This document shows, in pieces, positions 4,421 to 47,729 of a stretch of 64,000 nt of DNA (position 1 is the first letter of the stretch; every line of letters begins with the position of its first letter). Both the position numbers and the translations under genes were made by a program. Source of the DNA: Anaeramoeba ignava BMAN. Taxonomy: Eukaryota > Protista > Anaeramoebae. The notes beneath the pieces are model-generated. The model was not told the DNA's origin. It worked only from the letters and a program-made list of their open reading frames with translations, and did not search any database. Location of the stretch: assembly GCA_028826165.1 (NCBI GenBank), contig JAPDFW010000053.1, forward strand, positions 124,001 through 188,000, given 5' to 3'.

Positions 4421-7400
4421 TTAAAATATTTCATCTTCTTGTTCATCTTTCTCAAATCCTTCAAAATATCCATCTTTTTCATTTTCAGATAAAATAGATA
4501 AATTAATTAACATAATAATCATTTTTTCCATAATTTCATCCCAATTTTCCAAACTTGAATAATCAGAAACAATTCTTGCAAAAATATCATTTCGATATTT
4601 AATATTCATAAACAAATTGTAAATATGATTCAAAGCATCATAATAAATATTCTCATCAATATTTAATGTTTCAAAATATGGGAAAAATTGGACATTTTGA
4701 TCCAAAACTTTTTCAGTTGAAAAATCAACATCAGAAAACAAACATTCCCTTTTTTCAAAATCAATCATATTTTGCAAATTGATTTCCTTTTTGCAAATCA
4801 ATTTTTTTTCTTCATAATTTTTCAATAAACATATCACTTGTTCATTTGGTTGGAAATTAGGGATTGATTCTTGAGATAAATTTGGCTTCATTTGAACAAT
4901 ATTGATTGGCTCAAGAAGCCTTTCCATAAATTTCTTTGTTTGGGGAATAAAAGAATCAACAACATCATTAAGACTTTCCATTGTGGATCCTTCAGGAAAC
5001 ATTGCACGATTAGCGATTGACTGAATCACTTTGGAAATCAATACTAATGCTCTTCTATTTGTTGATGTTGGAGTTGTATTCGTGATTCCAAATTGTTCGG
5101 GTGTTACAATCGATGGGCATATAAATCGTAGGAAAACAAATCCTGAAAGCACAACATATTTTGTCTTTTCATCAGGAAATTTCTTAAATGTAATTTCGGA
5201 TAAAATTTGGCACACAATTCGATAAATAACAGGCATATAAGAGATTGACGAGAATATGTTGTGCAATAATTCCTCTGAATAATCTCGTATTTTTATCAGA
5301 TTTTCTCGGTTCATATCATTTTGAATTCCATCTTCAGGATAAATTTCAAATGCTGAATTGCAATCCATAATTTCTTGTATTGTTTTTCCAATTGATTTTT
5401 TAAGATGAAACCTTCCAAACATTTTCGCCATTTCTGATAGTATTTTGCTTGATTCGCTTTTTCCTCGAAATAGACATGATATGTTTGTTGTGCTATTCAC
5501 TTCTTTTCTAACAAGTTCTTCAATTAAACTTATCAGTGGTTTTTTGTGATATGCAAATATTATTATCATATCTTTACATAATGTTTCTGAGTTGAATGAA
5601 CCAATTTCTTCCAAAATAATGAGTGGAAAATTTATATTCTGAATAAATAAAAGTTCCATAAATTGTGCTTTTTCTTCATTATTTAAAATCTTCAATTGAT
5701 TTTGATTTTGATTTTGATTTTCATTCTCATTTTCATTTTCATTTTCATTTTCATTTTCCATTTTTGATTTACTTTTCGATTTTGATTTTGATTTGCCTTT
5801 TGATTTGCTCTTTGTAATTTGGATTGCTTGAAGAGTTATTCTTGATGGGAAAACAATTTTCACATTTGAACTATCAATATAATAATATTTCCCATTCTTT
5901 TCAACAAGAATTTTACCATTAACAATTTCATCATGATTTTTAGGAATCTCAATATTGAACCATTGATCTTTTGGTTGATTGAAAGAAGGAATTGATTCAT
6001 TTTTTTTGAAATTCGAATCTGAATCTTTTTCTTGAATCAAATTCATTGTTGATAATAATTGCAAATATTTTGAAGGAACATAAGCACGAGGATTATTATC
6101 ACTATCATTCGCAATATGAATTCTCAACAAATTTGAGAGTGTGATTAATTCCCAAATTTCATAAAGTTTGATATTCGATTGAAATTTTGAAAATTGGTTT
6201 TGGATTGATTGTTGTTTTTGGAGATCAATTTGGTGGTCATGTGTTTGAAGGTAAATTTTGCGCAAGGAATCAATTTGATTAAGACAAATATCCATTTGTG
6301 ATTCCAGCCAATCGCGAGCATCTTGAAGATCTAATTGGAATTTAGCAAGACGTTTTGAATTTTGAATTATATTTTTTTGATTTTGATTTTGATTTTGATT
6401 TTGATTTTGATTTTGATTTTGATTTTGATTTTGATTTTGATTTTGATTTTGAGAAAGATCTCCAATTTTAGATATTGGATTATTTATTGGATCTCCAATT
6501 AGTAATTGAAATGTTTTCAGAATGTTGAATGAATCAACCCATTTCTGTGCAACTTCACGAGAGAATGTTGATATAATCCAAGTTTTGGAATCGTTTTTGA
6601 GATGGAATAAATTTCCTTGAGCAGTTTTTGGAAGAAGAACTATATATTTTTCAAGCAAGGATTTTTCCTCTTCATTGAGTAATCTAATCTCATCAATTTC
6701 ATCCATTTTTATTGTTTTCACTGAACGAACATCGTTGATATCATTATAAAATTCGAGATCAGAACCGTTAATTTTAGCCCAATATTTCTTCCATTTGGAT
6801 GAAGTGAACCGTTTTGATTGAAGAACGAAAAGTGTGCCTGTTTTGTTGATAGGAGGCTTAATGATATGGAAATGAAACACTGTTGGTTGGACTTTATTTG
6901 ATAGAAAAGAATATATTTGTGTTGATTGTTTATCAAGTTCCATTTTTTTGATGATCCGCATATTTTTTGGATCAATAAACCCATTTTCGTTGTTAGTAAG
7001 ATTTGTTGCAAGAATTAATTGATGTTCTCGATTCAAAATGTTTGTGTATTGAGAATCAATTACAAACCATTGATATTTTTGATATTTCAATTTTTTCGTG
7101 TTTTTTGTTTGTTGTAAATTTTCTCGAAATGAAAATCCAAAAATCATTTTATCGAAATTGCTCAAATTTGAAAACAAAATCCAACAAATTTTAGAAAGAA
7201 TTAAATTCCTCCATCTTTTGTGATTCCTAATTTTAGAGCTTGAGAAATTAATTTTCTTCTTGGTCGAAATGTAAGAGTAATCATCGTAGTTCTCATAAAA
7301 TTGAAGTAAATTTTGGTATCCAATTTTCTCTTCTTTTTCTCGAATGATTTCTGTTTCGCTCCATTGATATAAATTAAACAGTGTATCCAATGCACTTTGT

Positions 7401-10400
7401 TTTTCATTTCCATTTTCATTCGAGAAAATTTTTGGAATTTGAAAGAAATTTGTGAATTCTGAAATTTTGTTGATTTTGTTCAGCCATTTATTAAGTTCAT
7501 CGTTATTTTCTACAGCAAAATATGTCTGGGAAATCAAGAAAGAAATTTGGAAGAGAAAATTTGTTGTTAGATCTGAAGAAAAAGGGTTTGAATTTTGGGG
7601 ATTTGGTGGTTGATTTGAATTAGAAAATGTATTTTGGATTGATTCGGGATAATTCAATAAATTCTTTTGTATTTTGAGATATTTGTTGATTCGGAATATT
7701 TTGGAGAATAAGTTGATTATTATTATTATTATCATCAATGTTTTCTTTTTTGATTGCAAATAAATGATCTCGAAGATCAAGAATTTTTGCAGGAATAGTT
7801 GATGTTGAAGAAGTGTAAAAAAGCATTATCCATCCGTTCATTACAACCCACCAACGGATCCAAGAATTCTCAACAAATTCATGAAGATTTCCTTGGTGAT
7901 AAACAGGAAAATTCATGATATCATCGTGCTTATCAATATTCCATTTACGAAGAAAATTAAGTGCGAATTCAACAGCTTGATTTTGATCAATCTCGTTAAG
8001 ATTATTGTGATATTCATCATCGAGATAATGGACAACTTTCTCAATAAGAGGTTGACGAAGTAAATTTGCTGGTTGATTTTTCAAAATTTGTGGAAGTTGC
8101 TGATTTGATTGAATGTTTGTATTTTGGGATTCTTTTTGTTGTTGAATAAGATTAATATTCGATGAAATGAGAAGATCTTTTTTGGATAGATTCAAATGGG
8201 GAGAATCTTGAGAAGTTTTTGGATCTTTTTTTCTGTTTGAAGAAATTTTTGATTGATTCAAATTATTTTTTGGAGATGAAAACTTTTCTTTTGGATTTTG
8301 TTTTTCTTGGTGTTGAATTCTGGATTGTTCTTTTGAAAATTTAAGTTTCAGCTGAGAATCTTGGGTTGAATTTGGGGATTCTCTGATAAAACTCATTGGA
8401 GAAGAAGGAAGAACAATCTCAACTTTGTTTGAAGGAATTAAACCAGTTTTTCCTTCAAGATTTTTGCAAAGCCAAGATTCAGAGGATTGCATTTTGATAA
8501 GAACCAAGAATTCGTTTTGGGAAAAAGCAAGTTCGTTTTGGTTTTTTGCGTTATAATTTTCAAGACAAAAAACGCGTTTGTTAAAATCAAATTGGGATGT
8601 GATGAGGAGTCTGCATACACGCGAAAGACACATTTTCCGCCAATCTTGCAAATTTTTGAGCCAATAATGAGTCTTTTGGATTTCCTTTTTGTGAGCAACA
8701 CCAAGACTCTGGTTTGCCATTAAACGAAGCTGAAGATCTGATTCTAGGGCAATCTCGCGTTGAAGCCAAGAGATTGCTTTGATATATTGTTCGTGGAAAT
8801 CCTTTTCTTCGCGTTTTTGCTGGGAAAATGGTGATATTAATAAGGTATATAAATTCTGTGCAATTTCACATGCATTCATCCATTGTTTTATTTTTGTATG
8901 AGAATCAGCACCAAAAAACCACACTTTTTTCTGTTTGTCAAGAATTCGGAAAAAATATTTTCCGTTTTGCACTTCTGCATGATTTTCAACATCTGCAAAC
9001 TCAGAAAGATGAAGAATAAATTCTGCGCCCGATTCGACCATCGAGTCTCTTTTGTTGCGGAACAAATACAGGGTCCAGGAATTGATCATCATCCACCGCA
9101 GTTTCCAAACATCCCTATTTTGCGATGGGATCTCATTGAATAAACCACGACGCAAATAAACCTCGTCTTCAAGAAATATAGGGAGTTTTGCTTGAATTCC
9201 AGAAAATTCAAATGAGGGTATTTTGGGTTTTTTCTGGTTTGGTGGCAATATAAACGTGTTGGATTCAAAAACAGCGCTTTTGGATGATCTTGATTTGGAA
9301 AATTCTTCAATTACTTGAGGACGTGCAATGCACTCGAATTCTCTCTGTGAAACATCGTGTAAATCACTGATTTCTTGTTCTTGATCATCCATTGTCACCA
9401 TTTCCACATTTTTTTCAGGAACATCTCCCACTTTTCCATGGAAATGAACCTTCATGATTCCGCCCTGTGGTTTTCTAACAAGGGTCATCCAATCTCCACG
9501 TTTGAATGAAAGTTGGTTGCGTTTGAGTGGCTGATAACTTTTCCATGCAAGCACCATTTTGTGGAGATCATCCTCCTTCTTCATGTTTGATTGAGCATCC
9601 ATATTCATCAAAAATAGTCTGAATTTCCCAATATTATCCATTAAAATAAAAGATGAATTCTGATTTTCCATTTCTAATTTAAACGAATCAAGAAATTCCA
9701 CAATTGACATTGTTGCCAAAGTATGTTTTTTTTTATCCTCCAAAGTTTGTGGAGCTTGACTCAATTGATAAAATAAATGTGATATTAATAATGCATCCAT
9801 CCATTCAATAAATTCCTCATAATTTTCTGTTGAAAAGAAAAAACGGGATTCACTAACTCCTTTTTCCCGTATTTTGATTGTGTATTTCCCAGGATTTTCC
9901 TTATCAACAAGCTGAGAAATTTGCACAACTTTCCGCAAATCAATTCCAAAAACGGGTTTATTTTTGTTGCTCTGTTGAAAAACCCCAAAAAACCAACCTT
10001 TCAGAAAAACCCAAAATTTCTTGTTGATAATTTTCCTTTCTCGTGATTTAATTGTTGCAATTTGGGTTTCAAGAAGTCCGTTTTTTTGGATTGGGGGGAA
10101 AAACTCATTCTTTTTTTCATAATCTGCAAAATCATTGAATAATTTTTCTGCCTTTCCTGTTGTTATTTGCAAGGCTATTACTTTGTCTGCTTGTGATTGA
10201 GGAATATTTCCTGAATTTTTCCTTCTCAATTCGTTTGCGAAATGAAGAGGAATAATTTCGCATCTATTGCGAGGAATCAATCCAGTTATTTTCCCAACAC
10301 ATCCCTGTAAAAAATGCGAATCATAAGGTTTGATATCGCAAATCCATTCTCCAAATCCAAAGGGAATATGCGGGAAGGGCTTGAATTTAAGTGATAAATA

Positions 10401-12727
10401 GGGCGAAATTGAATAACCCATTTCCTCGGCTTCGTTATTTGGAAAATGGGTTATTACATACAAATTTAATAATTGTGAACGAAGCCGATTTAATGAAGAA
10501 ATTTCATTCTCAAATACAGATAGATTTTGTTTTAATTGGGTAATGATATTCTGGTATTTGTTTTGCTTATTATTAAATTCAATTTCTGGATCTTGTGATG
10601 GAAATTGATCCATTTTTATGTGTTGGAATTCGTATTGAGTTGTTGCTTTCGAGAGGATTTGAGGTGCTCCGTGATTTGTTTTATATTTACTTGAAAAACG
10701 TTGTTGATGGATTTTGTCATTTAGATTCATTCTGGTATTTTTTGGAGATTCTACAAAAGATAATCCTCGAGAATTCAATTTTCTGTTTTTCAATGGAGTT
10801 TTTTTTTTGTTTTGAATATTAAATTCGGCAAGTGATTTTGTTCTTGTATCTTTTTCTTCTTCAATTTCTTTCTGTTCTTCACTTTTTATTGAAAAATTTG
10901 AATTTGATTTTAATTTTGATTTTGATTTTGGATTTGAACCAATCAAAATTCTGTTCAATTCAAAAAGTTTTTTGTGTAATTTTATCCTTGTTTCTTCAGC
11001 AAACCCCAAAATATCAGCTCGTTTTTGTTCGATCCAAAAAACAAGTTCGTTTGTCATTTTTTCATAATTTAAAGAACTGTTAATATCAGGAGATGAAATA
11101 TGAGAGTTGTTTATCATGTTCCAATTCATAACTAAACGCATAATTTGGATCCATTCATCCAACAAATTTTGCTCAACAACTCCAAAAGTGTTCATTGAGT
11201 CTTGTATATAAACAGAAAAGCTAAAGGGATCGTTTTCTTGGGAATCAATTTTTTTGACGGATTTCAATTCGGATAATTTGTATGAAATTTCTGGAATTGA
11301 ATCGTACTTGGAATTGTAAATAAAGAAATGATTCTGGGAAATTTGCGCCCATTTTTGTTTCCAAACGTCTTGTTTTGATCTTGAATTATAAAGAAGAAGA
11401 TTATTTTGGAATTTGATTTCCAAATCTTGCAAATCACAGTTTGAATTTTGGATTAAATTTTCATTTTGGTTTTTATCATCAATAACAATTTTGTCAGGAA
11501 TAAGAAGGACAGTGTTATTAATAGGAAACCAGCCAACTTTTCCATTATTTTCTCCAAACCAGTATGTGTCTTGATACGCCTCAAGTAAATTGATCAAATC
11601 AAATTTCTGAAGTTGAAGTTCCTTCTCATTTCTCGGCATAAAATTCTCAACGACAAGTAAAAACTGGCGAGGCGAAGAATAAAGATCTTGGTGAATAAGA
11701 AATAAGTTGTGAAGTATAAATTGCTCCCATTTTTGGATTGTTTGCAATTTATGTCGAAAAATTATCAATTCCACATTTTGATTCAAAAAATGATCGTTTT
11801 TTTCATCTTGTTTTTGCTTTAAAGTTTGAATTTTGAGTTGTTCCAAAAATTCAAGTAAAGTTTTTAACAGATCTTTGTCGTAGTAATCCAGCTTTCTTTT
11901 TGGTAAATTTTGGAAAACTTGAATCAATTTAAGAGTTGAATTCCAAGATTCAAGTTCAAGTTGATTTTCAAACTGAAGAAAGTATTTTTGTTGATTGGCA
12001 GCAATTTCCAGAGTTGAAGGGATTACTGGATCAGATATATAAGGATAAAAAGAGAGGGGATTATTAAAATTAATTGAGAAAATTTTGGTTGAAATGTCCT
12101 GAGTTTGGTTGAAATCCGTTGTGTTATAAAATGAAAGAGTATTGTTTTCTAAAATCAAGAAACCTTTTTTGTGATTTAAAGTTTCATTTTCAAGAAGATT
12201 CACAACAGCCTTTTTATCAAATAAGGCTTCCAAATCGATATCTGTTTGTTGTTCGTCAAATTTCAGAAAAAGTCGCTTGATTTTTTCTTTTGGTTCTTCA
12301 AGTGTTCTGTATTTTTCAGGGATTCCAAAGTTGGATGAAAAGATTTCTGGGTTTGTTGGTGAGAATTTTTCAATATTCGCGTTAATTTTCATTTCATTTA
12401 TTCTCAATGTTTGGGATGAAATTATTTTTGAATTTTGCGTTTTTTGGATTGAAGTTAAAATTTCTTTTTGTGGATTTAAATTATTAATTGGGAAAGTAAA
12501 ATTTTCTAATGAAAAACAAATCCAAAAATTAATACCAAAAAATTCTTCAGTTAATTTTTTATTTTTTTTTTACCTGGAAATTTTCCTTTTTGTTTTGATT
12601 TTGTTGATATTCCAAAATTCCATCCATTTTCAATTTTTTCAATTTCTATTATTTCTCCTCTTTGGAAGTTTAGAATATTTTTAAATTGTGCAAGATAATC
12701 AAATAAAGCTATTGAAGAAAAAGCCAT
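4421..12727 (-). CDS. Giant multi-SH3/multi-PH Ras GTPase-activating protein (~2,740 aa); intron ~12507-12572; one frameshift near 7665
   Basis: Exon 1 (ATG 12727) encodes an SH3 domain (ALFDY..GW..GKFP|ENF). Further SH3 motifs include GKVGWFPINN, GKVGDVPEKNV and GKTGLIPSNKV. PH domains are marked by WKQKWAQI, WKLRWMMI and WKKYWAKI with C-terminal W-helices. RasGAP signatures are LFRGKSESSKIL, FVFLRFICPSIVTP and LVLISKVIQSIAN. A PH domain is split across ORFs 7620-12407 and 4421-7780. Confidence 0.85.
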
Positions 12728-32525: not shown

Positions 32526-35500
32526 TTATTTTGGAATCCATTCAGAAACAAAATAATAAGCACTTACAGAATGCCTCAATAAAATAGAAGGAGGGAAATG
32601 ATTACCAATTAGATCAATCACTTCATTTTCTCTTTCATTTGAAGTATCCATTTCAACAATAACAGATTTCAACGTAAATAATTTATTCAAACTTTCATTG
32701 AGTTTTATCAAAAAACGTTTCCAAATCAAAAGAAGAGTATTGAGATCAGGAAAGAATTGTTTGCAATCAAGTAAATCCTTCTCTTGCTTTTGGTCAATTT
32801 CATGGAGAAACTTTTTAGGAACATCTTGCTTTGGATTGAAGAAATACTCAACAAAATTTTCGTGCAAATCCTTCAAATGCTTTAATTGGATCGAACTGAC
32901 AAATTTTTTAGACCCATTTTTGACTTGAATGAAATCGGCACTATTTTTGAGTTGAAGATTCTCTTCGGAAAATTGGATCAGATTCTTCTCAGGAAGATTC
33001 GAGACATGGACACTATCTACAGGGATGTTTGAACACGAAAAAACCAGTGTATTGACTAAACTCATGCATTGGAGCATTGAATTTGAGGCTTCCAATTCTT
33101 GCAAAATTTCGTGCCAAACGCTTTTGGGTATTTTTTCTTGCATCCACTGCCCTTTATCCAGTATGTGAAGTTTGGGATTCACATCATCATTGAAAATAAA
33201 GTCGGTGATTTTCAGGTCGATTTTTGAATATCTCAAAGGGAAGTTGAGATACTCTAAAAGATAATCGTGCAAAACTTGCAGTAAGTTTTGGTTAATTTGG
33301 TTGTCGTTTATGAAATCAATCACATCGTTCATGTTAATGCTCAAGAAGTGCGAGAAATCAAAAGAATCAAGTTGGATCGGAAAATTCAAGGTGCCAACGT
33401 TTTTGGATTCGTTTTTCAGAACAAATGAATGCGAAAGTGGAACAGATCTTTGCAATTGGCTTTTCTGTTCATTTGAATGGGAAAGACCGACTTGATCCAT
33501 AATATCGTTATGAACTTCAACAATATGCTCAAGTAGCTTGGGTGCGCAAAGGAAAATGTTCTCTGCTCCTGGCAAACATGTTCCAATCGAAACCTCCTTC
33601 TTCATACGAAAGTTGGAAAGAAAATTTGGTGTTGCGCGACAGGTAAGCATTCTCCTGACATCTTTCCATGCCAAGTTCCACACAGTCTCGAAATCTTGGT
33701 ACCATTTCTCAATAAGATCCCTCTGTTTTTTGCTTTTTTCTTGCGAGAGAAATTGCGAAATGGTCATTTCTTCTGCTTTTTTACGAGAAATTTTCCCATT
33801 TAACTGCGAAATCACAAACGAGGTGAACTTGAGATATCCCGGTAAAAACCTGAAAACGGTTAATTCCTTTTGCTTTTCGTTGACAAAATTGATAATCGGA
33901 AACTTTGTAATGTTAGACACATCTCGGTAATAAAACCCCATGAATTGTTCATATGTGTGTCTTTGATAAGGAGCAAATGGCCACGGCACTTCTGAATATA
34001 GAAGAGAAGACAAAACCCTTCTTTCTTTCGATTTTTTGTTCAGATTTTCGAGCTCTTCCCGAATACTAGCCTCTTCGTTCGTAACCATATCATTGAATAT
34101 TTTTTCAATCTCATTTCTTTTCGAGCTTTCTTGGAGATCTTCAATTTCCTTGATTCCGAAAAATTTCGAATATTTTGGATCGGCCATTTTATTCAAGACC
34201 AAATGGTAATAAAGATATGAGTCTTCTTTAGATAGTTTAAGTATCCCACCTAATAAGGAAAAGCTGATGATGATGTTTCTTTTTAACAATTCAGGAATTT
34301 TCTCCATTTGCGAGGGTTTATCCACAGGTGGATCGATAAGAAGAAAGAAGTTGCGGAGGAAATTGGTGTTGATTGATGAGAAACAAAGAGCAATTGAGTT
34401 GGTCATGATTTGGAGTATAATATAAGAAACGGGAGAAAGACTGCGAACAATTTGCTGGTCTGGCATTGAGATAGAGTGCAGAAAGCCTGGATAGTTTAAG
34501 AAAACCTCTTCAGTCGCTCTTTCAGTCCCCTCTAATTCTCGATGATATACTGCACCTGATTCTTCACCGCATAGAGGGCACTTCATGACTTCTTTGGGAA
34601 TTCCGCATTGATCAACAAGATATGGATGGTTGTTAGGGCACTTCCACCATTTGTTTGGATCGAGGAGGAAGAGTTGATAGTAAGGATGAGGAGGAACACC
34701 AGGCCAGATCGCGTTCTTCAATTTTTTTCGATTGCTCTGTGCCGACTCTTCATCCGGGTTTGATCGCATCGGTTGTGATGTGAACGAAAAAAAAGGTTCG
34801 AAATGTAGAGCTTGAACTAGCTCTAAAGAGTGGAAAGAAACTCGAATAAGATCTGCATCCTTTATTGCTTGAAGAAAATCTTCCCGAAAGTTGTATGCCG
34901 CTCGCGCAGGTTCGCACGATGGTTTGTAAGTGTTTTCAGTGATAGAGCTGTCTGAAACATAGGGTTGAAAAATACTTGCGAGCGACTTTGTTTCAATTCT
35001 TGGAATATGAATGTCACAAGGGAAAAAATTTGGATTGAAAACCCTAATTTTATTAAGAATTGAGAAATTCTCGTTGTTGAATTCGGTGAGAAAATTGAAA
35101 ACAAAATTATAAAGCTCTATTGGACCACGGTTGTAATATATTGATCTGCAGAGGAAAAGAATCCATTCCTTGCCTTCTTTTTTTTCCTTTAAAAATTTTC
35201 CGTACTTTTCGATAATTTTGTTGGGATTGTCAATAATTAATTTGCGGAAACGGAAAATATTGCAAATTGACTGGAAAGAAAAGGGTTTTGTGAGTAATTT
35301 TTTTGGGTTTTCATGAAAAACGGAAATTTGAGCATTGTTGTCATCATTATCCAAACTCAAATTATTATTGTTATCGTAATCTGAATAATAGTCATTTTCA
35401 TTGGATTGCTCGTTTTGAAAGATGGCCTTCTCCAAAATTTCCTGCTTCTCTTTCTCTTTCTCGTTTTGGTCGATCAACACTTGCAAACACGAACGACCAA

Positions 35501-38500
35501 TTTTACTTAAAACAGAACTAGAAGATGATTTTGCCTTAGAAAGAAATACATCCAAAATCGCGATAAATTCTTTGTAAAAGATGGGGAACTTCTCTGAATA
35601 AACAATAATTTCTCGAGTCAATCCTTTGATAGCAAACTCAGAAAAAGTGGAAATGATATAGAACTTAGAGTTTTTTCCAAGAAGAATATTGACAAAATTC
35701 TTGAGAAATAATCCACTTTCCTCGTTTTTTAAAGAGAAATCAAGAAGTGTTTGCTGTAGTAAAATGCTGCCGAATTTTTGGAAGAAAAAGGATATGTGAC
35801 TTTTGAGTTTCTGGAACTGTATTTGGCATTTCTTCAATGTTTCTTTTGATTTATCGAAGTGCATATCCAATTTCTCAAATGGATGTTCGCAGAACGGGCA
35901 ATTCTTTGTGGGAAGGTCATTGATTTCTTGTCTTGTAATTGGAGAATGCTTTTTTTTGCAAAAGTAGATGTCATTTGGGGTTAAATCTTTGGCAATTTCG
36001 TCGATACTCTTCATTATGGGTGAGTAATAACGGGAAATTACATGAGAAAACAACGTGTTCCAAATCAGGAAGAAAAGTGTTTCCGGATCTTTTTTTTCGT
36101 GATTTTCATCCAAACCCAAAATGATTTCTTCGAAGATTTGGGATATAGTATCCTTGTCAATAAAGGCATCTTGGTTCAAAGGAATCAAAATACAAATCAA
36201 GAAGCTTCTTAAAATCAAGTTTATGTTCCATTTCTGGCTCAATTCAAGAATCTTACTTCGCTGAGATTCGTGTTTTGATTTGTACTTTATCAGCATCAAG
36301 ATCAGATTCCGCACATATGAATTTGAGTAGCTGATTGATTCGCAAACAGAAATTTTATCTTCGAGTTCCTTATGGGCAAACAGGATTGTTTGTAAGGTAT
36401 CAGAGTAGTTGTTAAGCAAGGAAAGGATCAAGGATTCCTTTTTACTTTTTTGTGAATTTGGGTCTTTTTTCAAGGATTCATGAGAAAGAAACTTGTGTAA
36501 TTGTTTTTTTATCAGCACAATATCTTTCAAATATGGTTTGATTCTTTCCGAATAGATTTTGTGGATTGTTCTGAGTGGAAGTTTCTCAATTTTTTTGTGT
36601 TCTAATTCCTGAATCAAGTCGAATAAATCAATTTCTGTTGTTGTTGTTATTTGATCTTGAAAATGATCCTTCCCCAGCACAATCAAGATGAAATCATGTA
36701 GATATTTTCGAAGTAATTTGATCGCATTTTTTCTAATTGTACTCTTACTGTGATTCCCTTTAACAATTTCGAGATTGATCAATGGCTTATCTGCAATTTC
36801 TCTTAAAAATGGCATTTCTTCGCTGATATTTTCAAAGTTTTCGATCAAGGAATAGATATAGAACGAAAACGGAAACTGCGAATCTCTGAAATGATCCTGC
36901 ACAAAAACATTGAGATATGGCACACGGTATTCAGAGAAAATGGAATTCCAAATATTTTTCACAACATGCTTTTCATTCACAAGAAGTAGATTCTGGTTCA
37001 AATTCAATTTGTTTATCAAAAGAGCAAAAATGTTTGGTAATTTTGGTTACAAAATCATCAAAGAAATAAGATGCAAAGGAGGTTTTTCCGTTGTGGTTAC
37101 TTAGGATTTTCTGGAAGTTCCATTGATAAATCTTCATGTTTTTCTCACTTCCTTCTGTGATCATTTGCTGAATTTTCTGGAAGGCCATTTTCTGGATTTC
37201 TTTATTTTGAGTCAAGATGTTGTATATTTTATCGAAATCTGTTTTGAAATTGATGTTTGTTGGGTCGGAAAATTTGGAAATTGCAGAAGCAATAATTTGG
37301 GAAATGAAATCGAGGAATTTCTTCTCGATTTTGATGAAAATGCTTTTCAGATCAGCCTTTTCCTCCTGAAGAGAAATGACATCAATTCCGTATTTCTGTT
37401 CCAATTCATCCAAATAATAAAATTCCCAGTTGTCTTCAAAGCTATAAAAGAAAGAATCGCTGGAAATACTCGATGCTAAATGAAGCACAAAAATAATATA
37501 ACACTCGTGATTTTGGATGGGGTAACTCCGACGCGCAGAAATGCTTTTGATTTTCTGGATTTCTTTGTTTCTGTTGTGCTCATAAAAGTGCTGAGAAACA
37601 AAATCTTCAACAAGATACTTCGTTTGATAAAACAGCTCCAAAGACTCTCTTTCAGAAAGACTGAGATGAATAACCAAAACAGACTTATCAGAATTAATTT
37701 TCGCGTAGAATTTCTCTTTCAAATCATTTTTCAAATCGGAATCAGTTTCGTAGTCTGATAAATCAAACGACACCTGAGAATAGTGGTGCGGCAAAGATAG
37801 TTTTTTACTTTCAGCGCTTGAGGAATATGTCAAAAGAATGGTGTTTTTGATCTTGTTGGGCAGAATCTCCTTGCGGAATAGTGTTTTAAAATCTGGAAAA
37901 TAATGGCTTTTAAATTCTTTCCATATGCTTTCCAGAAATTTTTTGTGTTTGGGCTTCATGTTGCTGTCATTCGAAATGAAATCAGCAATTTGCATCATTT
38001 TGCCAATTTTGCATATTCTAATCCAGTATTTACTTGCCTGGTCGATGTTCCCGCTTTGGTGCTGGTTTTGGAGTTTAATTGAAAGAGAAGGCAGCAAATC
38101 ACGATGGTAATTAATAATCATATTCTCCTTAGAAATTTGGTTATTGGTGATTTGCGCAATTTCCGTCAGTTTCTTGATTTGTTGATCGTAGAAATTCTTC
38201 ATTTGTTCTGAAGTGATATAATCTTTAGGGAGAACAAGCTGCTTTTCAAAACGGTTAAGAATAGGCGGCGATTCGGTTTGGTACGCACGCTGTTTATCCG
38301 TGATAATAATCATTCGGAATTTTTCGTTAATAAGGATATTCTGAGTGATATGGCCAAAAGAAATGCGTGCAAATAAACGATCACCTTCACGAATATAGTT
38401 TTGGTTCAGCAAATCATAAAGAGGCTCGTAGAGCTGCGTGTTGTTGCAAATCACAATTGTTTGTCCTGAAAGAATTGCCTTCTCGACTTTGTTGAGATTC

Positions 38501-41500
38501 TGGATGATCCGAAAAGGTTTTTTATCTTCCGCAAATGATGAGCCAAACAAGATGTTGTAATCGTTTTTGATCTCGGAAAGAATTATTGGAAGCGAGGATA
38601 GGTTGTTTGTGAGAATCATTAAATGCCGGGAAAATTTCTGGGGATGATTTAAAATGGATTTGGGTAGTTGTATATTCTTAAACTTAGGCTGTGTTTTATC
38701 AATAATGGAAAGATCCAAATTTTGCGAGATTAACGAAAGAGTTGTGGGAAATTTGATTTTAGAGGTATGAATATCGAGAATCTGATATATTTCTTCGAAT
38801 GGATCGAGAATATCTGGTTTGGAACCAAAATTTCTCAAGATTGAGTTGAAAAGCATTAAGGGATCATCGTAAGGGATTCGGTTTTTGGAGAAATTCAACC
38901 CGATCATTTTGAGAAAATAATAGAAATCTCGGAGTCCAAAATAGTTTTTGTTGTTTGAATGGTTGGCAGCGGCTGTTTGAGAAAAAGGCATACTATTAAA
39001 ATTCACATTAGAATCGAGGGTGAATTGCTCATCCATTTTTTGCTGTTTCCTAAGGATATGTTCATAAAGTTTAGCAAGTTTTTTGGCGAATGATTCGGGA
39101 ATTTTGGAGTCAAAAGAATGTAGTATTTGTGTTGCTGTTGTTGCGAGTTCATTGAAATTTGGATCAACTCTTCTCAAGAAGATTCCTCTGTTCGTCTGGC
39201 TTGGATCAAGCTCCCAATTTGATACAGATATAATGGAAATGTTTGGTTCTTCTTCTCCCAAATTGGTGCTGTTGGAATTGAGTAATTTCTTGTCAGCCTT
39301 TTCGAGTTCGAAGTGAAGCACTTTCAACGGAAGATCTGGACTGAATTCTGCAAGTGCGACTTCATCAAGAATGACGGTACTCAAATTATCGCGAGAATTT
39401 GTTGAAGCGTATCTGCGAGCTCTCTCGAATATCCGGGTAATTCCTTCTGCAGTGATGATTGGCGAGCATTGAATATAAAAGGGTTTTAATGCAGGAAGCT
39501 CCCATTTTTGCAAGAATTGGTTTGTTTTTTTTGGGGGTCGAAGTGTTTGCATGAGAATTTCGATTGAGATTGATTTCGACGAGCCAGGTTTTCCGACAAG
39601 AAATAACGGGATCTGTGTGTAGCAACAGAAGAAGATTAAAAGGATATTTTCCTTGAGAGACTGATTATAAGCAATATTTTGTTCTTGGTAGTTAATTTGC
39701 AATTCTTTGATCAGATTTTCTTGTGTATTTTCGATAATTTCCTTAGCACCACCTTTTCGTTTTGGCTCTTTTTGAAAAGCTTTCCGGTATTTCTCAGCAA
39801 AGTTGTCGATTAATTGGAAGTACTTAACCCTTAAGGGAGTGTTGAATCTGCATCCAAAGCAAATGAACAAAGAAACAATCATTGCTTTTTTGGTTTTTTC
39901 TTTTGGATCTTCGGACGGAAACAGCAAATCTCCAATTTTATTTAACAATAGCCATTGCAAAACATGCAGAACTTTTGAAGAGTCTCGCAAAGAAACAAAC
40001 ACCAATTTGTCATTGGGGTTTTCGCGGATGAACCTGTGTGATTCGTAAAGAACAGAAGAAAACAAATCTGTTGTTTGATCGTCAAATAAAATTTCATTAT
40101 TTTTCAAGGATTTGATTGAAATGATGGAATTCTGGACCATTTTGGTGATATAAGACTGTTCTGATTTATCATTCAATTTCCCGTAGTCATAAATATTATC
40201 GAAATAAGAATCAGGAATGGGACGCACTCTGTAAACAATTTTGGTGTTTGTCTCTGCATCTTTTTCCCGTTCGCCATAGTCGAAAGTAATTCCTGCTTGT
40301 GGCTCATTCATCTCGCTATTTTCGTTATTTTCCAAATTTTTTCGCAAAATGTATGGATTTCCTGCAGCAATAAGAGCAATTTTTGGAGACACTGGCTCCC
40401 CATTAAGCAATCGATCTGAAAACAATGATTTTAGCAGCATAATGCATTTTTTGGGAGCGGTATTAAATTCATCGAAGAAAATATAAACGGTTTCGTTTTT
40501 GGAGTTGGCTACACTTTCTGCATCTTTAACAAACTTTGTGATTGTTTTCCTTTTGATTTTGCCGTGAATTGTGAGAGTGAACAATTTCTGTTGAAGAATT
40601 TTATCGCATAAATAGTTGATTAGGGATGTTTTTCCGCATCCTGTCTCACCGAGAAGAATTACAGGAAGACCTGCAAATAATCTGTACTGGATGAAAATCA
40701 TCTTGAGAAAGTTGTCTGTTGTGAATGTGTACCTGGATTGGTTTTTTTGATGCAGATCCGCTAAGCCTTGGATATCAACTGGTTTCGAGCTCAGTCCTTC
40801 AAGTGCTGAAAAGGCCTTCTGGTAATTTTTAATGTTACTATCCTTCGGGAGTGGTTCTCCAAAGTTAATCATGTTTCTCTCCAATATTTTACGCAAATCT
40901 GGATCGAAGCATTTCTGCATTTCTTTTTCATCATTCCCCAATATATTAATTCCTCTCAATAGAGTAGATGTCTGTCCGTTATTTGTTGCCTTAATGACAA
41001 GGATAATAATAAAAGAGCTGCCGAGAATCCCAGGGAACCATCTGTTTAAAAGTATTGCACATGTCTTCCATTTCCACTTCATTTGAATCACTTCTTATTT
41101 GAGAACTTGTCCAATCAAAAGAGCGTTCGACCATGTTAACAACAGACTTGATATAGGCATCGATAAATTGAGTTCGGAAAAGTTCTCCATTCAGATTATT
41201 CCCGAAAACCTCTGCTGAGATACTGGGAATTATCAAGGTATAAGTCATGAATCCCTTGATATGTGACTTGAGAATTTCCCAGAAATTAGAGAGTAGCCGA
41301 AATGTGAGTTGTTGTTTAGAATTGGCTTGAAGTATCGATTTGCTTTTTTGATATAAAAAGAGAGTATCTTTTCCTTCTTGAAAAATGGAGAAAACCATCC
41401 TTCTTTCGTCTGATTCTTTGTTCAAGGATTGAAATTTCTCGTCGTATAATCGAAACAAATTAACAACTCCAATCAAATCTTCGTCTCTTTCTTTTGATAT

Positions 41501-44500
41501 TGATCCGTTCCTGGGTATATATCGATCAAAAGAAACAATTTTTCCCCTGACTTTGCAGATGTTTTCTGGTAAGTATCTCAAAGGAGGGAAGAACATAAGT
41601 GTTTCATTTAAAGATTCGTTTGACGGAGCCTCGAATCGATGACTGGGAATCTCGAAAACCAATGTTACATTTTCTGATAAATTCCATGCAGAATTATCGA
41701 GCGAGAATGCGTGTTTATTTTCGATCGATCCCCACATCAACAGAGTCCACAGATAGTCGGATATTTTTGACTGAGTAAAATAGGGAAGTTCAACATGAAT
41801 ATAGTACTTTGTTGTGGGCTTCTGCTTTCTGCATATGGAGTTCAATTTTGTGATGATTTCGTTTCTGTTTTCTGATGTGATCAGGATCTGATGATATGAG
41901 GATTCTTGGCTATTTTGATTTTGTTCGTAGCAAAATTTGCGAATCTGAAAAGTTTTTCCTGATCCTGCGAGTTGCGATGTGAAAACTTTCATTCTTGAAG
42001 TAGAAGTGTTTTTCGAAACAAACTTCTGGAGTTGATCTTTGTTGATGCAAATTTTGCCAATTTCGTTAATGAATCCCGAATGGAAGGCATGATAAAGATT
42101 CTTGAAAAGGGATTTGGGACCTGAACAAAAAATAGCCATTGGGAATTGTGTTTCAAAGGAAATTGAGTTGATATTGGAAATGAAGATATTTTGATTCTTT
42201 TTGGAAAGTTGATCCGCATGAACCACAACAAAAAGAGAAGGGTGAGTGACGCTGTTCGTGACTAAATTTTTGTTTGTATTGTATAATTCGTAAACCTTGA
42301 GGAAATGCAGAATGTCTTCTTCAGTGGTTTCTTTTTCACAAATGAGAACTTGCTCTCTCAGTGGGAAATGATAAGAGAAAAGGAAAAAAAAGCTAGAAAC
42401 ATAATCGTAGATCTTGATCTCTTGAGTAATGTGGCACATGAATATTTTTGGATCAGCAACTTTCCCGCTTTTTCTGTTGAAATTGGAAATCAATAGTTTC
42501 TGCATATCCTGGAAATTTTGACTAGTATCCAATAATTCTCGGGGAATTTCAATTACTCTTTGCTTTTCAAAAGATTTCTGTAAAATACTATTCAATGTTT
42601 TTGCATATCCTTGGAATTGTGTTATTTTATTTTTGAGCTTTGATGCAATGGTTTCAAAAGATATTTTGTGCGAATACAGCCCAAGTAACTTCAAAAGAAT
42701 TTGCTCTTGTTCTTGTTCTTGTTCTTTTTTTTTTGGAGTCGATTTTGACAGGGAGTGTGATTTCAATGCATGCAAAATATGAAGGGTTTGCTCAGTAGAA
42801 AAAAAGGAAAGATAGCCCATAGTATTGAAAACCTCTTGGATATTTTTTTTCCATTCTTTCAAATCCAAGATTAATTGGTTATGGAATTGTGACAAGAAAT
42901 TTTGAAAAATTTCTTTTGATCCATAGACGAACATCTTAAAAAAATTGAATTTGTATTCAAAATGGAAATTCAGAATCAATTCCCAAAGCAGGTCGATTGA
43001 TTTTTGAATGAGCTCAAAAAAATCAAGGAAAGCAAGAATTGCTTGGTTTGTTTCTGCTCTTTGCTCTTTTTCATCGTTCGGCACCTGATAATTGTAGAAA
43101 ACAGCATAAAGATCTTCGAAATCATTGAAAGAAAACTTGAGGTTATCAACTTCGCAAATGAATACCTGTGACTTTTGCGATTCTGATCTAAAGAAAAATT
43201 TAGTTTCTGGATTGAAAATCTTGACAACATTACTTTTGGCTCTCATTTGAGAGGAATCGCTTTGAGAACTGAGCAGACCCGAGATTTCGGGAAGAAGTTT
43301 ATGAATCAAAGAAAACGAAATATCTTGTTTTTTTGTTTGCCATTTCTTCTCTTCTTTAGCGATTAATTTCACAAATTCCTTAAATGATGAGAATTCCGTT
43401 TTGTATATATATTTTTGCATTCTTTCTTGCAAAACCAGAAGATACTGGGCAGTAACCTTGTCTCTTTGGTCTTCGAAAATATCAGGATTAAAATGGGAGG
43501 ATTTTTTATTTGTTCGGAGCCAATCAATAAGAGTTGTATTCAATTCAATTTTGGAAAAAAGCTTCTTTGTGGATATTTCTTTTGGGTAATTTGCAGGAAT
43601 CAATTCTCCAAAGAAAGAAAGAGGAATAGAATCAAAACTAGGAATTGTGCTTTTGAGATTATCGGAAATTTGTTTAATTTTTTTCAAGGTTGAATTTTTC
43701 CAATCAATTGAAATATCTTTTGCTAGTCCATCTTTTGAGCTTTTAAAAGTATAAAAGCTGCAAAATTTGCGGAAACTGATTATATCGAGTTTTTGCTTTC
43801 TGAATTCAAGAAATGAACGTATTTTTTCATCAATTTTTTCTCTCGCTTGTGGATTTTGATGTTGATATTCAGGAGAGAAAAATTTGATTTCTTTGTCGAT
43901 CCAATTTCCATCTTTGTCAATGGGAAAAAGATCTCCAAGAGCAGAAAAAGTGATTTCTTCGCTTTCAATAGAATTATAAAGCTGCGCCCATTCCTCACAT
44001 ATTTTTGGAATGAATTTATTCTGAAACTCATTAATGTCCAAGTTTTCCTTCATAAAAGGTTTCAAAGTCGAATTCCATAAATTTTGGAAGATGTTTGAAT
44101 TTTGGAGAGAATGAATCCAGCGTAGAAATGAGAAATTAATTTGTGATTTTTTGAAAATTTCTTGCATTTTATGAAGAGGCTCTTTTGTTTCCTGTATTTG
44201 CTGTATTTGAGACTTGATATTTCCGAAATGTTCCGAATCTTCTCTCAAGTAAAAATTATCAAAAGTTTTGAGCAAATCCATATTAAAAGAGACTTGTAGA
44301 TATTTAGTATTAACCTCTTTGAAAACTAGCTTTTGAGATAAAACAACATCAAAAAGAATAGTGAAGTCTCCTCTGTATTTATTGAGATGAACAAATTCTT
44401 GGTAAGAGGCTTCAGATGAATGGATTCTGTTTCCAAAATCGAGAATTTGTTGAGAATATTTCCCAAGTAGCTTAGTAAGTGCATGTTTTTTGTTATTGAA

Positions 44501-46177
44501 TTCAGGAAATGATTCTTTATAAATTTTGAGCCATTTAAAACCAAGGCTTAATCTGTAAATGATATTTTGGTCGCCTTTTTTAAACTCGGGGATTAGTTCC
44601 ACAATGTTTGTTTTGGTGTTCTGCATTGAATGAACATCGATCAGGATATAATTTTCCCATTCAGGACATTGAATCTTTAGAAAATCAATTTGCTTAATAA
44701 TTTCGGTATTTTCAATAAGAGATTCTTTTCTGATTTTGTGATACCAAGTCTTGAGGAAAATTTCCAGCTTTTCAAACATTTCTTGTGGTGATTCTTTGAT
44801 TTTATCCATGACTCCTTGAGATTCACAAAGAATTTTGAGATTTGAAAGTGGATTTGATAAGTCGATAAATTTTTGGTTGAAAAAAGATTCTATGATTTCA
44901 TCTTGAATATTAACTGGAGAATTGCTATCAAAATTTAAGCTAAGATAAGGATCGACAAAAATATTTTCATTTTGGTTGTCGGTATTTTTTTGAGTTGAAA
45001 TTTTTCTGAAACGCAAGTAAAACGCGTTCCAAAATGTGAAAAATGATAAAGGATCTTCAAAAGATGAATTTCTGAAAAGTTGAAAAGTATAAACTGCATT
45101 TCCGTTAAAAGCTCGAAAAAATTTGGTGAGTAAATCTTCATGTGATTGAAATAATTCAAGCAAAATGTCAAGCCAGAATTTATCTTTAAAATAATCAGAT
45201 CCAAAAAGAAAAGCAAATAAAGTTGGATTGATAAAATGAACTAATTCTTTTGATGAAAGTCCAATATCGAGCAATTCGAAAAAATAATTCTTTGAAATCT
45301 TATTAGAATGAAGTAATTCAACGAAAGAGAATTGAATTTCAAGATGAATAAGAATGAAAGAATAAAGAATTATTTCTTTTTTCAAATCGTTTAGATTCAA
45401 TAAATATTTTTCAAATACATTTTTAATTTTGATTTGAATTTCTTCGTTGATTTGCGATTTATCTTCAAGAACTTCCATTAAAATTTTTGCGAACACGATA
45501 ATTTGTTCTTGCAAATCATTTTCTGGAAAAAGTAAGTTTGTTGCAATTGTAGAATCGTATATGTAATCAAGTATAGAAAGCAACAAGAAATTTTGCATTT
45601 TTGATTTTTCCGATTTTTCTAATTTTGATTTTGATTTTGATTTTGATTTTGATTTTGAATTTGAATTTGATTTTTTTGAATTTAATTTTTTGGATTTCTT
45701 TAAAATCCATTTTCTTAATCTTTCATTATCAGGTGTTTTTTGATTAATCAATGATGAAATAAAAGTAGAAATTTGTGGTATTTTTTGATATGAAAATTCT
45801 TTTGATAAGAAAATCATTGAATCTAATAATTTTAAAACGGATTCATTTTGAAAATATTTTGGATTTCTGTTTAGAGAAACAAATTCAAAAAACTCAATAA
45901 AAACGGACTTGAATTCATTTTTTTCAATTATATATTGTGTTGATTTAATGTTCTGTTCAATTTGAAAATGAAATTTAAGTAAATGTTTGTCTTCATTTTT
46001 TTTTGCTTCTCTTTCAAATTTTGCAAACCAAATATTTTTTGATAAACTTGGTTTTTTTAATTTAATTTCTTCTTCTTTGTCACTTGAATCAATTAATAAT
46101 TTAACTTGAAATTTCTTTAAATTTTCGATTGTATGGTTTTTTATAACTAACCAAATGTAAAATTTATTTTTATTCAT
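32526..46177 (-). CDS. RNF213: RNF213/mysterin-like giant AAA+ ATPase E3 ubiquitin ligase (~4,550 aa, intronless), split by two +1 frameshifts (~41012, ~37028)
   Basis: SQLAGSGKT; PVILLGETGCGKT; FFDEFNT; IAAGNPY; VYRVRPIP; VSLRD; PLFLVGKPGSSKS; LDEVALAEFSPDLPLKVLH; SNWELDP; FGLRDFY; LYDLLNQNY; PILNRFEK; RZ finger WWKCPNNHPYLVDQCG..CPLCG; VEVHND; IQLKH. These match RNF213 motifs in the expected order. Confidence 0.9.
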
Positions 46178-46199
46178 TGAAAAAAAAAATAAAAAAAAA

Positions 46200-47680
46200 A
46201 AAGGAAAAAAAAACAAAATTTTTTCCTTTTTTTTTTTAATCAACAAAAATAAAAAATTATAATAATTTTAAATAATATATTATTTATATTTTCAATTTAT
46301 TTTTAATTAATTGAATAATTTTGATTATTAATTTAATAATAAAATTAAATATTAAATTATTTATTTTTGTTGATTAAAAAAAACAAAATTTTTTCCTTTT
46401 TTTTTTTAATCAACAAAAATAAATAATTTTAATAACTTTAAATAATAGATTATTTATATTTTCATTTTATTTTAAATTAATTAAATAATTTTATTTATTA
46501 ATTTAATATTTTTATTTATTTATTAATTATATTTTTATTCCAAAAAAAAGTGGAATTGAAATATTTTTTATTTTTAAAAAATAAATAATTATAATAACTT
46601 TTAAATAATAGATTATTTATATTTTCATTTTATTTTAAATTAATTAAATAATTTTAATTATTAATTTAATATTTTTATTAATTTATTAATTATATTTTTA
46701 TTCCAAAAAAAAAGTGGAATTGAAATATTTTTATTTTAAAAATATAATTAATTTTAATAACTTTAAATAATAGATTATTTATATTTTCAATTTATTTTTA
46801 ATTAATTAAATAATTTTGATTATTAATTTAATATTTTTATTTATTTATTAATTATATTTTTATTTCAAAAAAAAAGTGGAATTGAAATATTTTTTATTTT
46901 AAAAAATAATTAATTTTAATAACTTTAAATAATAGATTATTTATATTTTCATTTTATTTTAAATTAATTAAATAATTTTAATTATTAATTTAATATTTTT
47001 ATTTATTTATTAAATTATATTTTTTAAAATAATTTTATTTTCATTTTTAATCAACAAAAATAAATAATTTTAATAATTTTAAATAATATATTATTTATAT
47101 TTTTCAATTTATTTTAAATTGATTAAATAATTTTATTTATTAATTTAATATTTTTTTATTTATTTATTAATTATATATTTTATTTCAAAAAGTGGAATTG
47201 AAATATTTTTTATTTTAAAATATAATTAATTTTAATAACTTTAAATAATATATTATTTATATTTTCATTTTATTTTAAATTGATTAAATAATTTTATTTA
47301 TTAATTTAATATTTTTATTTATTTATTAAATTATATTTTTATTTCCAAAAAAAAAGTGGAATTGAAATATTTTTTATTTTAAAATATAAATAATTATAAT
47401 AACTTTAAATAATAGATTATTTATATTTTCATTTTATTTTAAATTAATTAAATAATTTTAATTATTAATTTAATATTTTTATTTATTTATTAATTATATT
47501 TTTATTTCAAAAAAAAAGTGGAATTGAAATATTTTTTATTTTAAAAAATAATTAATTATAATAATTTTAAATAATAGATTATTTATATTTTCATTTTATT
47601 TTTAATTAATTAAATAATTTTAATTATTAAATTAATATTTTTATTTATTATAAATTATATTTTTAAAATAATTTTATTTT
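46200..47680. repeat. Intergenic ~163-bp AT-rich tandem satellite, ~9 units, between divergent RNF213 and VPS16
   Basis: The anchor AAAAGTGGAATTG occurs at 46550, 46714, 46876, 47192, 47356 and 47518 (spacing 162-164 bp, with one ~316-bp gap spanning a variant unit). Confidence 0.92.
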
Positions 47681-47729
47681 CATTTTTTTTTTCATTTTTT
47701 TTTTCATTTTTTTTCATTTTTTTTTTAAA
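47681..47729 (+). promoter_or_regulatory. Repeated TCATTTT initiator-like elements immediately before the ATG (example; seen at most genes)
   Basis: (TTCATTTTT)x4 before the VPS16 ATG. The same pattern precedes the ATGs at 12875, 13679, 17542, 22764, 50664 and, on the - strand, 12727, 21382, 26513, 28354, 32390. Confidence 0.6.

Follow-up and report, generated by a model that had tools for sequence, protein, structure and literature searches.

To our knowledge, RNF213 (mysterin) is the only ligase known to ubiquitylate bacterial lipopolysaccharide (LPS), while lipid-droplet, organelle or membrane quality control is among the reported activities of the mammalian protein. How it works and how it arose are being actively studied. 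In human RNF213 the residues of the Walker motifs and of the RZ finger have been assigned, including the zinc ligands, the nucleophile and the general base of the latter (PMC11549300, PMC12075652). The RING of mammalian RNF213 is dispensable both for auto- and for LPS ubiquitylation, and the mouse protein's C-terminal domain (CTD) holds the E2-binding site, where F5093, W5097 and Y5106 contact UBE2L3 (PMC11549300, PMC12075652). The gene described here comes from the protist Anaeramoeba ignava BMAN and is located in a stretch of 64,000 nucleotides, below called the window (contig JAPDFW010000053.1, positions 124,001 to 188,000; all coordinates below are those of the window). It lies on the minus strand, from the ATG at 46177-46175 to the stop at 32528-32526, and, when two spurious reference bases are discounted, consists of one exon with 4,549 codons. 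A model reading the sequence alone had made the original prediction of a full-length RNF213-like E3 and a candidate antibacterial or symbiont-control system.

The window protein has the architecture and the conserved residues of the family, and its reading frame is intact. It shares with mammalian RNF213 (6TAX, 8S24, 9JW1) the order of the parts, the Walker residues of AAA3 and AAA4, the fold of the E3 shell, the identical spacing of RZ ligands and catalytic residues, and a CTD likewise reaching the protein end. The differences are in length (the window protein is ~660 residues shorter than human RNF213, chiefly at the N-terminus), in the absence of the C3HC4 RING, of which only a C-x19-C-x2-C-x10-H remnant is left, in substituted E2-contact residues of the CTD, and in sequence, the identity being ~30% in the core and ~15% in the aligned E3 segment. 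Moreover, mammalian RNF213 is encoded by a single gene or a pair, while the window gene is one of more than 50 paralogues. Taking these features together, we consider it quite likely that this is an intact, intron-less RNF213-family gene whose probable RZ ligase mechanism follows from homology, and which is probably a member of a bacteria-marking repertoire.

In the reference sequence the gene is divided between three minus-strand open reading frames (ORFs) at 46246..40991 (1,751 codons), 41091..36973 (1,372 codons) and 37019..32526 (1,497 codons), each successive ORF being offset by +1 relative to the preceding one. The ATG at 46177 is the first one preceded by a clean AT-rich spacer, and the G+C content of the coding region (0.27-0.37) differs strongly from that of the flanks (~0.10); the A+T content of 77% in the window fits that of 80.65% in the A. 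ignava genome (PMC11550330). In a tblastn alignment with the closest paralogue, from contig C70, not a single residue is missing across both junctions. The first frame switch falls exactly at 41012/41013, with the identical paralogue residue on either side, and the second one lies between 37033 and 36974, where 59 bases face 20 paralogue residues. Since the alignment is continuous at both switches, the breaks are single-base events rather than introns. Introns are also ruled out by the composition of the junctions, as neither contains an AT-rich intron-like insert and the coding composition there is normal.

Over positions 36400-41600 the reference was compared with short-read contigs from four public sequencing runs, which belong to two studies and two samples (contig depth 106-210). 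The evidence on the breaks thus comes from contigs and not from raw reads, so that the dominant form is visible while a rare variant is possible. At the first junction one base, 41011, is absent from the contigs of all four runs, and at the second junction one base is absent at 37036 (X1, X3, X4) or 37033 (X2). As the contigs of all four runs lack one base per junction, the gene is a single ORF of 4,549 codons, in agreement with the original prediction, in which the three overlapping ORFs had been read as one protein of ~4,550 residues, and the two apparent frameshifts are errors of the Nanopore-based reference. The alleles at the second junction differ by one synonymous base (Thr codons ACA and ACC), and the reference apparently merged them into a string that is one base too long. 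The A. ignava assembly was made from Nanopore R9.4 reads and afterwards corrected (PMC11550330), a setting in which such reference errors persist, which fits the spurious bases.

These data bear on two other explanations of the breaks. The gene could be a pseudogene with two real frameshifts, given the two +1 breaks in the reference and the fact that several paralogues carry stops or frame breaks. Still, this is very improbable, as the surplus base is missing at both sites in all four contig sets, no stops except those caused by the two junctions occur along 13.6 kb, sequence variants are mostly synonymous (see below), and the catalytic residues are all kept. Even less credible is programmed +1 ribosomal frameshifting: both shifts are indeed +1 and occur in short homopolymer or slippery-looking runs, but no programmed shift is needed when the DNA itself lacks the surplus base in every contig set, and the closest paralogues are read straight through.

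The top match (P0001) of the C70 paralogue in a database search is M0811_04787 (2,778 aa, 'RZ-type domain-containing protein'), which turns out to be a shortened public model of the very same gene (32529-40920). It starts from an internal Met at 40920 and skips 37050-36993 as a false 58-nt intron. The public gene model is therefore corrected from 2,778 to 4,549 residues, with the two assembly errors behind the shortening. Other giant genes of this assembly have probably been split by homopolymer errors of the same kind.

The run contigs of one sample disagree at 14 sites in the 5.2 kb compared (~0.27%), therefore both alleles are present. Nine of these variants are synonymous and five non-synonymous, while a synonymous share of ~20% would be expected (p 4e-4, or p 0.008 with an assumed share of 30%), and this excess fits a gene under purifying selection. 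A/T in the reference stands against G/C in the other allele at 11 of these 14 sites. Coexistence of two alleles in this region means that the culture is non-haploid or non-clonal; haploidy was assumed for the symbiont-per-host estimates in the A. ignava genome paper (PMC11550330).

Similarity searches were run on the three ORF pieces (N, middle and C) separately. The middle piece matches solved RNF213 across AAA3, AAA4 and the following region with the best E-value of 8.3e-90 (phmmer against PDB sequences), and all nine distinct PDB sequences matched by it at E<=0.01 are RNF213. The alignment to the solved structures covers only AAA3-AAA4 and ~300 residues after them; in this region the Walker motifs A and B of both AAA3 and AAA4 are intact and conserved in comparison with solved RNF213, and follow in the order claimed in the original prediction. 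The Pfam matches to AAA_5, which falls on the core, and to AAA_7 are generic P-loop ones. The N piece has no matches among PDB sequences at E<=1 and nothing meaningful in Pfam. In a local phmmer comparison all three pieces are colinear with the protein from Naegleria, the N piece only weakly, and the middle and C pieces are colinear with oyster and fox proteins.

Of the rival AAA families, midasin and dynein were considered and rejected, as neither appears among the matches, those in PDB at E<=0.01 being solely RNF213, and RNF213 is also the best structural match of the E3 shell (see below). ZNFX1 has the RZ-type zinc finger (PF20173) in common with the window protein, but its ATPase is a superfamily 1 helicase, whereas here it is the dynein-like AAA of the RNF213 type; no helicase family beyond the generic P-loop matches and no ZNFX1 chain was found.

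The Pfam family ZnF_RZ-type (PF20173) matches residues 789-833 of the C piece with E 2e-12, so that the complete RZ finger placed by the original prediction at ~34540-34650 is found there, at 34542-34640. Its six zinc-binding and catalytic residues align residue for residue with human RNF213 and have the same spacing, including the H-x6-C step that had been noticed from the sequence. The six columns are invariant in an alignment of 40 sequences (852 residues, ending with the RZ finger), in which the window copy and two paralogues are joined by 37 proteins from other organisms. Judging by these alignments, every known catalytic residue of RNF213 is in place in the window protein. In the paralogue from contig C57 the zinc ligands are retained, while the nucleophile Cys and the base His are absent; the invariance of this dyad here and its loss in the C57 copy suggest selection for catalysis in the window copy.

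The helical region preceding the RZ finger was modelled with AlphaFold (AF2) from the same 40-sequence alignment. RNF213 takes the first nine places among the Foldseek matches of this model in PDB (E 1.8e-4 to 8e-3), and importin-like repeats follow at E>0.017. In VIA-align, residues 31-648 of the model are superposed with residues 3701-4311 of the human E3 module (9jwg_A) with Z 11.2 and root-mean-square deviation 7.2 over 481 residues, the next row having Z 7.2; by the standards of helical proteins this is a moderate match, though one in agreement with the other evidence. Residues 789-1488 of the C piece (RZ finger and CTD) match residues 4540-5234 of 8s24, again RNF213, with E 8.5e-18 (phmmer against PDB). 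With the RZ finger, AAA3 and AAA4, the RNF213-like E3 shell and the CTD all present, the protein is full-length, as had been predicted.

The RING remnant is common to the C70 and C128 paralogues, as seen from their alignment with vertebrate, oyster and Naegleria proteins. Naegleria and oyster proteins retain a degenerate eight-ligand RING-like pattern, whereas the Anaeramoeba copies lack its middle. The absence of a Pfam-detectable RING is shared with relatives from other protists and many invertebrates (for instance Naegleria gruberi; oyster, crinoid and Hydra 'rnf213-alpha-like'), which have the AAA core and, in the proteins checked, the RZ motif in common with the window protein and are colinear with it, weak matches in the N-terminal arm included; still, the Anaeramoeba copies form their own clade, separate from these proteins. 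When the C70 paralogue, which is free of stops, is used as the query of a database search, a Pfam RING is present only in the vertebrate and sponge matches, and in none of those from Naegleria, Hydra, oyster and crinoid.

The same search returns A. ignava proteins (M0811_ tags), two of them bearing the names 'e3 ubiquitin-protein ligase rnf213' and 'RZ-type domain-containing protein', as well as an RZ-bearing protein of Naegleria gruberi (NAEGRDRAFT_79490, 4,953 aa). The gene thus belongs to the RNF213 family already in databases, A. ignava and Naegleria included, and is less novel than the original prediction implied. In the literature collection searched, no paper joins Anaeramoeba and RNF213, and a broader search, for RNF213 in amoebae, gave nothing relevant among the top matches, which is not proof of absence.

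The paralogue count and the phylogeny that had been proposed together with the prediction reveal a large family. With AAA4 as a query, at least 52 RNF213-like places are found in the assembly that contains the window, and the Pfam RZ model finds eight RZ fingers, seven of which retain all six residues. The Walker motifs are kept in most of the 21 closest loci (20 loci and the C70 paralogue), one locus (C58:506k) being clearly degenerate. The 18 A. ignava rows of a maximum-likelihood tree (AAA4-AAA5 region) all group together in one clade, which is supported at 100/100 and stands apart from Naegleria, from protist and metagenomic sequences, and from animals. The window copy forms a separate branch (0.27) and has no near-identical twin, its core identity with the four closest copies (C70, C128, C127 and one of the C104 copies) being 53-57%. 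Among the A. ignava paralogues (C70, C128, C127, C13, C104 and others) the RING remnant and the RZ finger are the same in the RZ-bearing subset, but, unlike most paralogues, the window copy retains the Cys/His dyad, and its N-terminus is unique.

Several other features of this family were observed. Some paralogues are nearly identical, with branch lengths of 0.002-0.02: L026/L043 (C128, C104:261k), L028/L031/L027/L044 (C127, C13, C29, C104:617k), L029/L030 (C124:69k, C46:311k), L036/L039 (C57:402k, C57:213k) and L038/L041 (C60:742k, C143:114k). Such groups stem from segmental duplications of very recent date or from haplotype contigs left uncollapsed, and the latter would inflate the locus counts. 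A striking share of the loci lies close to a contig end, a few kb away at most (C126:2k, C105:3k, C107:0.6k, C73:0.4k, C117:4k, C54:1.7k, C64:4k, C35:719k, C124:162k, C127:157k, C143:114k, C29:64k, C58:592k); the reason is either that the assembly breaks at members of this family or that the copies occupy chromosome-end regions. In L034, L035, L036, L038, L040, L042, L045 and the joined C57 sequence the match breaks at GKPG|SSKS inside the AAA4 Walker A motif, a pattern suggesting that in one subfamily the P-loop is split by a conserved intron; no intron occurs at this position in the window copy or in its closest relatives. Finally, at G000:C72:442739-442885 there is an RZ finger that hardly differs from that at C104:612671 and has no AAA4 match listed nearby; a C-terminal fragment that became detached, or a partial duplication of recent date, may explain it.

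The N-terminus of the window protein has no counterpart in the paralogues: its first 150 residues have no match elsewhere in the A. ignava genome, and Pfam gives nothing meaningful for residues 1-110. Residues 1-95 are all-beta in a single-sequence AF2 model (predicted local distance difference test score, pLDDT, of 49), and Foldseek ranks CBM20 starch-binding domains first for this model (those of STBD1, CGTase and beta-amylase, at E 5e-3 or weaker). In a protein-language feature search (Atlas) CBM_21 and CBM53 clusters are listed for the head at 0.82, while the N-terminal 1,100 residues yield weak leads alone (0.82-0.85). In human RNF213 a CBM20 occupies residues 378-515, and the head of the window protein may be CBM20-like too. 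As VIA-align scores CBM20 and immunoglobulin-like sandwiches alike (Z 6.2-7.7), and thus cannot separate them, and Pfam is silent, this resemblance is treated as a mere lead.

The coordinates of all these features are collected in the table.

Table. Features of the RNF213-like gene of A. ignava, from the N-terminus to the C-terminus of the protein (window positions).
Feature	Position	Strand	Basis or remark
Whole gene	32526..46177	-	single exon, 4,549 codons after discounting two spurious reference bases
N-terminal ~95 residues	45893..46177	-	predicted all-beta sandwich, possibly CBM20-like; unique to the window copy
P-loop GSGKT, N piece, upstream of AAA3	41951..41965	-	sequence only; candidate AAA2 nucleotide site
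Junction 1	41011..41014	-	coding-strand T4 run, one surplus reference base; corrected reading ...WDSRQLFIIILVIKA...
AAA3-AAA4 and downstream core	38041..40737	-	phmmer against PDB, E 8.3e-90, only RNF213 chains
AAA3 Walker A GETGCGKT	40627..40650	-	Lys 1849 aligned to human K2426
AAA3 Walker B IFFDEFN	40462..40482	-	FFDE, Glu 1903 aligned to human E2488
AAA4 Walker A GKPGSSKS	39571..39594	-	Lys 2201 aligned to human K2775
AAA4 Walker B VILDEVA	39355..39375	-	ILDE, Glu 2272 aligned to human E2845
Junction 2	37033..37038	-	one surplus reference base at a two-allele site; corrected reading ...VTKITNIFALLINKLNL...
E3 shell, helical	35052..36905	-	AlphaFold (AF2) model from the 40-sequence alignment, mean pLDDT 71.5
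RING remnant, C-x19-C-x2-C-x10-H, 35 residues	35859..35963	-	site of the vertebrate C3HC4 RING (alignments)
RZ finger, C-x3-H-x6-C-x8-C-x2-C-x8-H	34542..34640	-	PF20173, alignment to human RNF213
RZ zinc ligand C3846			human C4505
RZ zinc ligand H3850			human H4509
RZ nucleophile C3857			human C4516
RZ zinc ligand C3866			human C4525
RZ zinc ligand C3869			human C4528
RZ general base H3878			human H4537
C-terminal domain	32529..34520	-	colinear with human RNF213 to ~10 residues from the end

Two further observations concern the rest of the window. The spacer to the divergently transcribed Vps16 gene (46178-47729, 1.55 kb) is made up entirely of nine tandem AT-rich units of ~162 bp, which are 72-100% identical over a 77-nt core and have short hairpin-forming inverted repeats inside. 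Within 4421-12407, the minus-strand ORF 4421..7780 (RasGAP, PH) overlaps the ORF 7620..12407 (SH3, PH), and the two resemble one split gene; the split could be a further assembly frameshift or an intron.

From the homology to mammalian RNF213 we infer that the catalytic cycle would be the same. The protein consists, from the N-terminus, of a variable arm (possibly with the CBM20-like head), the dynein-like AAA+ core, the RING-less helical E3 shell, the RZ finger and the CTD. ATP at AAA3 and AAA4 would license the E3 module, the E2~ubiquitin docked on the CTD would hand ubiquitin to the RZ cysteine C3857, aided by H3878, and the RZ finger would place it onto the substrate; substrates of the mammalian enzyme include non-protein hydroxyls such as lipid A. 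The window gene is then probably one of a few ligase-competent members in a large lineage-specific repertoire marking bacteria or bacteria-containing compartments. A role in antibacterial tagging or symbiont control is loosely suggested by the mammalian analogy, by the family of at least 52 loci, by the N-terminus unique to this copy and by the possible CBM20-like head, while the idea of a recognition repertoire follows from the large lineage-specific family, the copy-specific N-termini and the mixture of live and dead copies.

Several observations weigh against this interpretation. No run among the four is recorded as RNA, and transcription is not something that contigs can reveal; for X1, contigs from DNA and from RNA would both end at the AT-rich flanks. 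No Pfam RING family is found at E<=0.1 and no C3HC4 pattern occurs in the protein. The residues corresponding to the mouse E2 contacts F5093, W5097 and Y5106 are Leu, Phe and Met, respectively, still hydrophobic but substituted, hence neither the E2 partner nor the activity is guaranteed. The CBM20-like assignment of the head comes from a low-confidence model. The neighbouring genes encode Vps16, a BTB-BACK-TLDc protein and an HlyIII-type protein, all of them ordinary and without a visible functional link, and thus the system spoken of in the original prediction is not present at this locus. The host is a symbiont-bearing anaerobic amoeba, as had been conjectured, but the symbionts of A. ignava reside in membrane-bound symbiosomes open to the outside (PMC11550330), whereas mammalian RNF213 encounters LPS in the cytosol.

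The first of the alternatives raised by these points is a non-catalytic scaffold or sensor, in which the RNF213 motifs would be retained by descent and, without a RING and with an altered E2 interface, no ubiquitin would be transferred. The reduction of the RING to a remnant, the E2-contact residues unlike those of mouse and the many clearly degenerate paralogues agree with it. We regard it as distinctly unlikely, since the RING of mammalian RNF213 is not required for auto- or LPS ubiquitylation, and neither the nucleophile Cys nor the base His varies among the 40 aligned sequences, while both are lost in C57, the single degenerate paralogue that was inspected.

An active enzyme with a housekeeping job, such as lipid-droplet, organelle or membrane quality control, is a more serious competitor, possible though still somewhat unlikely. 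The expansion would in this case reflect the general inflation of gene families, very many of which are expanded in Anaeramoeba (PMC11550330); the ordinary neighbourhood is in line with this, and the link to bacteria is drawn by analogy only. On the other hand, at least 50 diverged copies with copy-specific N-termini and many degenerate members fit a recognition repertoire better, which is an argument from analogy as well. The bacteria-marking repertoire may also be imagined in a more elaborate form, which we find unlikely: a germline repertoire of more than 50 members, where a handful of RZ-competent copies, the window one included, would act as ubiquitin-writing executioners, fast-diverging N-terminal heads (here possibly the CBM20-like sandwich, binding glycans) would steer each of them to bacterial prey, escaped bacteria or the symbiosome, and dead copies would serve as sensors, decoys or coat subunits. 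If true, such a repertoire would be a protist counterpart of the expanded immune receptor families of animals and plants, and it would show RZ-finger transthiolation, and not the RING, to be the conserved core activity of RNF213.

For the RNF213 family, a naturally RING-less, RZ-competent member from a deep-branching, bacteria-hosting protist provides a compact natural test of whether the RZ finger alone carries the activity. The window protein is a good first candidate for biochemical tests in a protist, and its gene is a starting point for asking whether the ubiquitin coating of bacteria predates animals.

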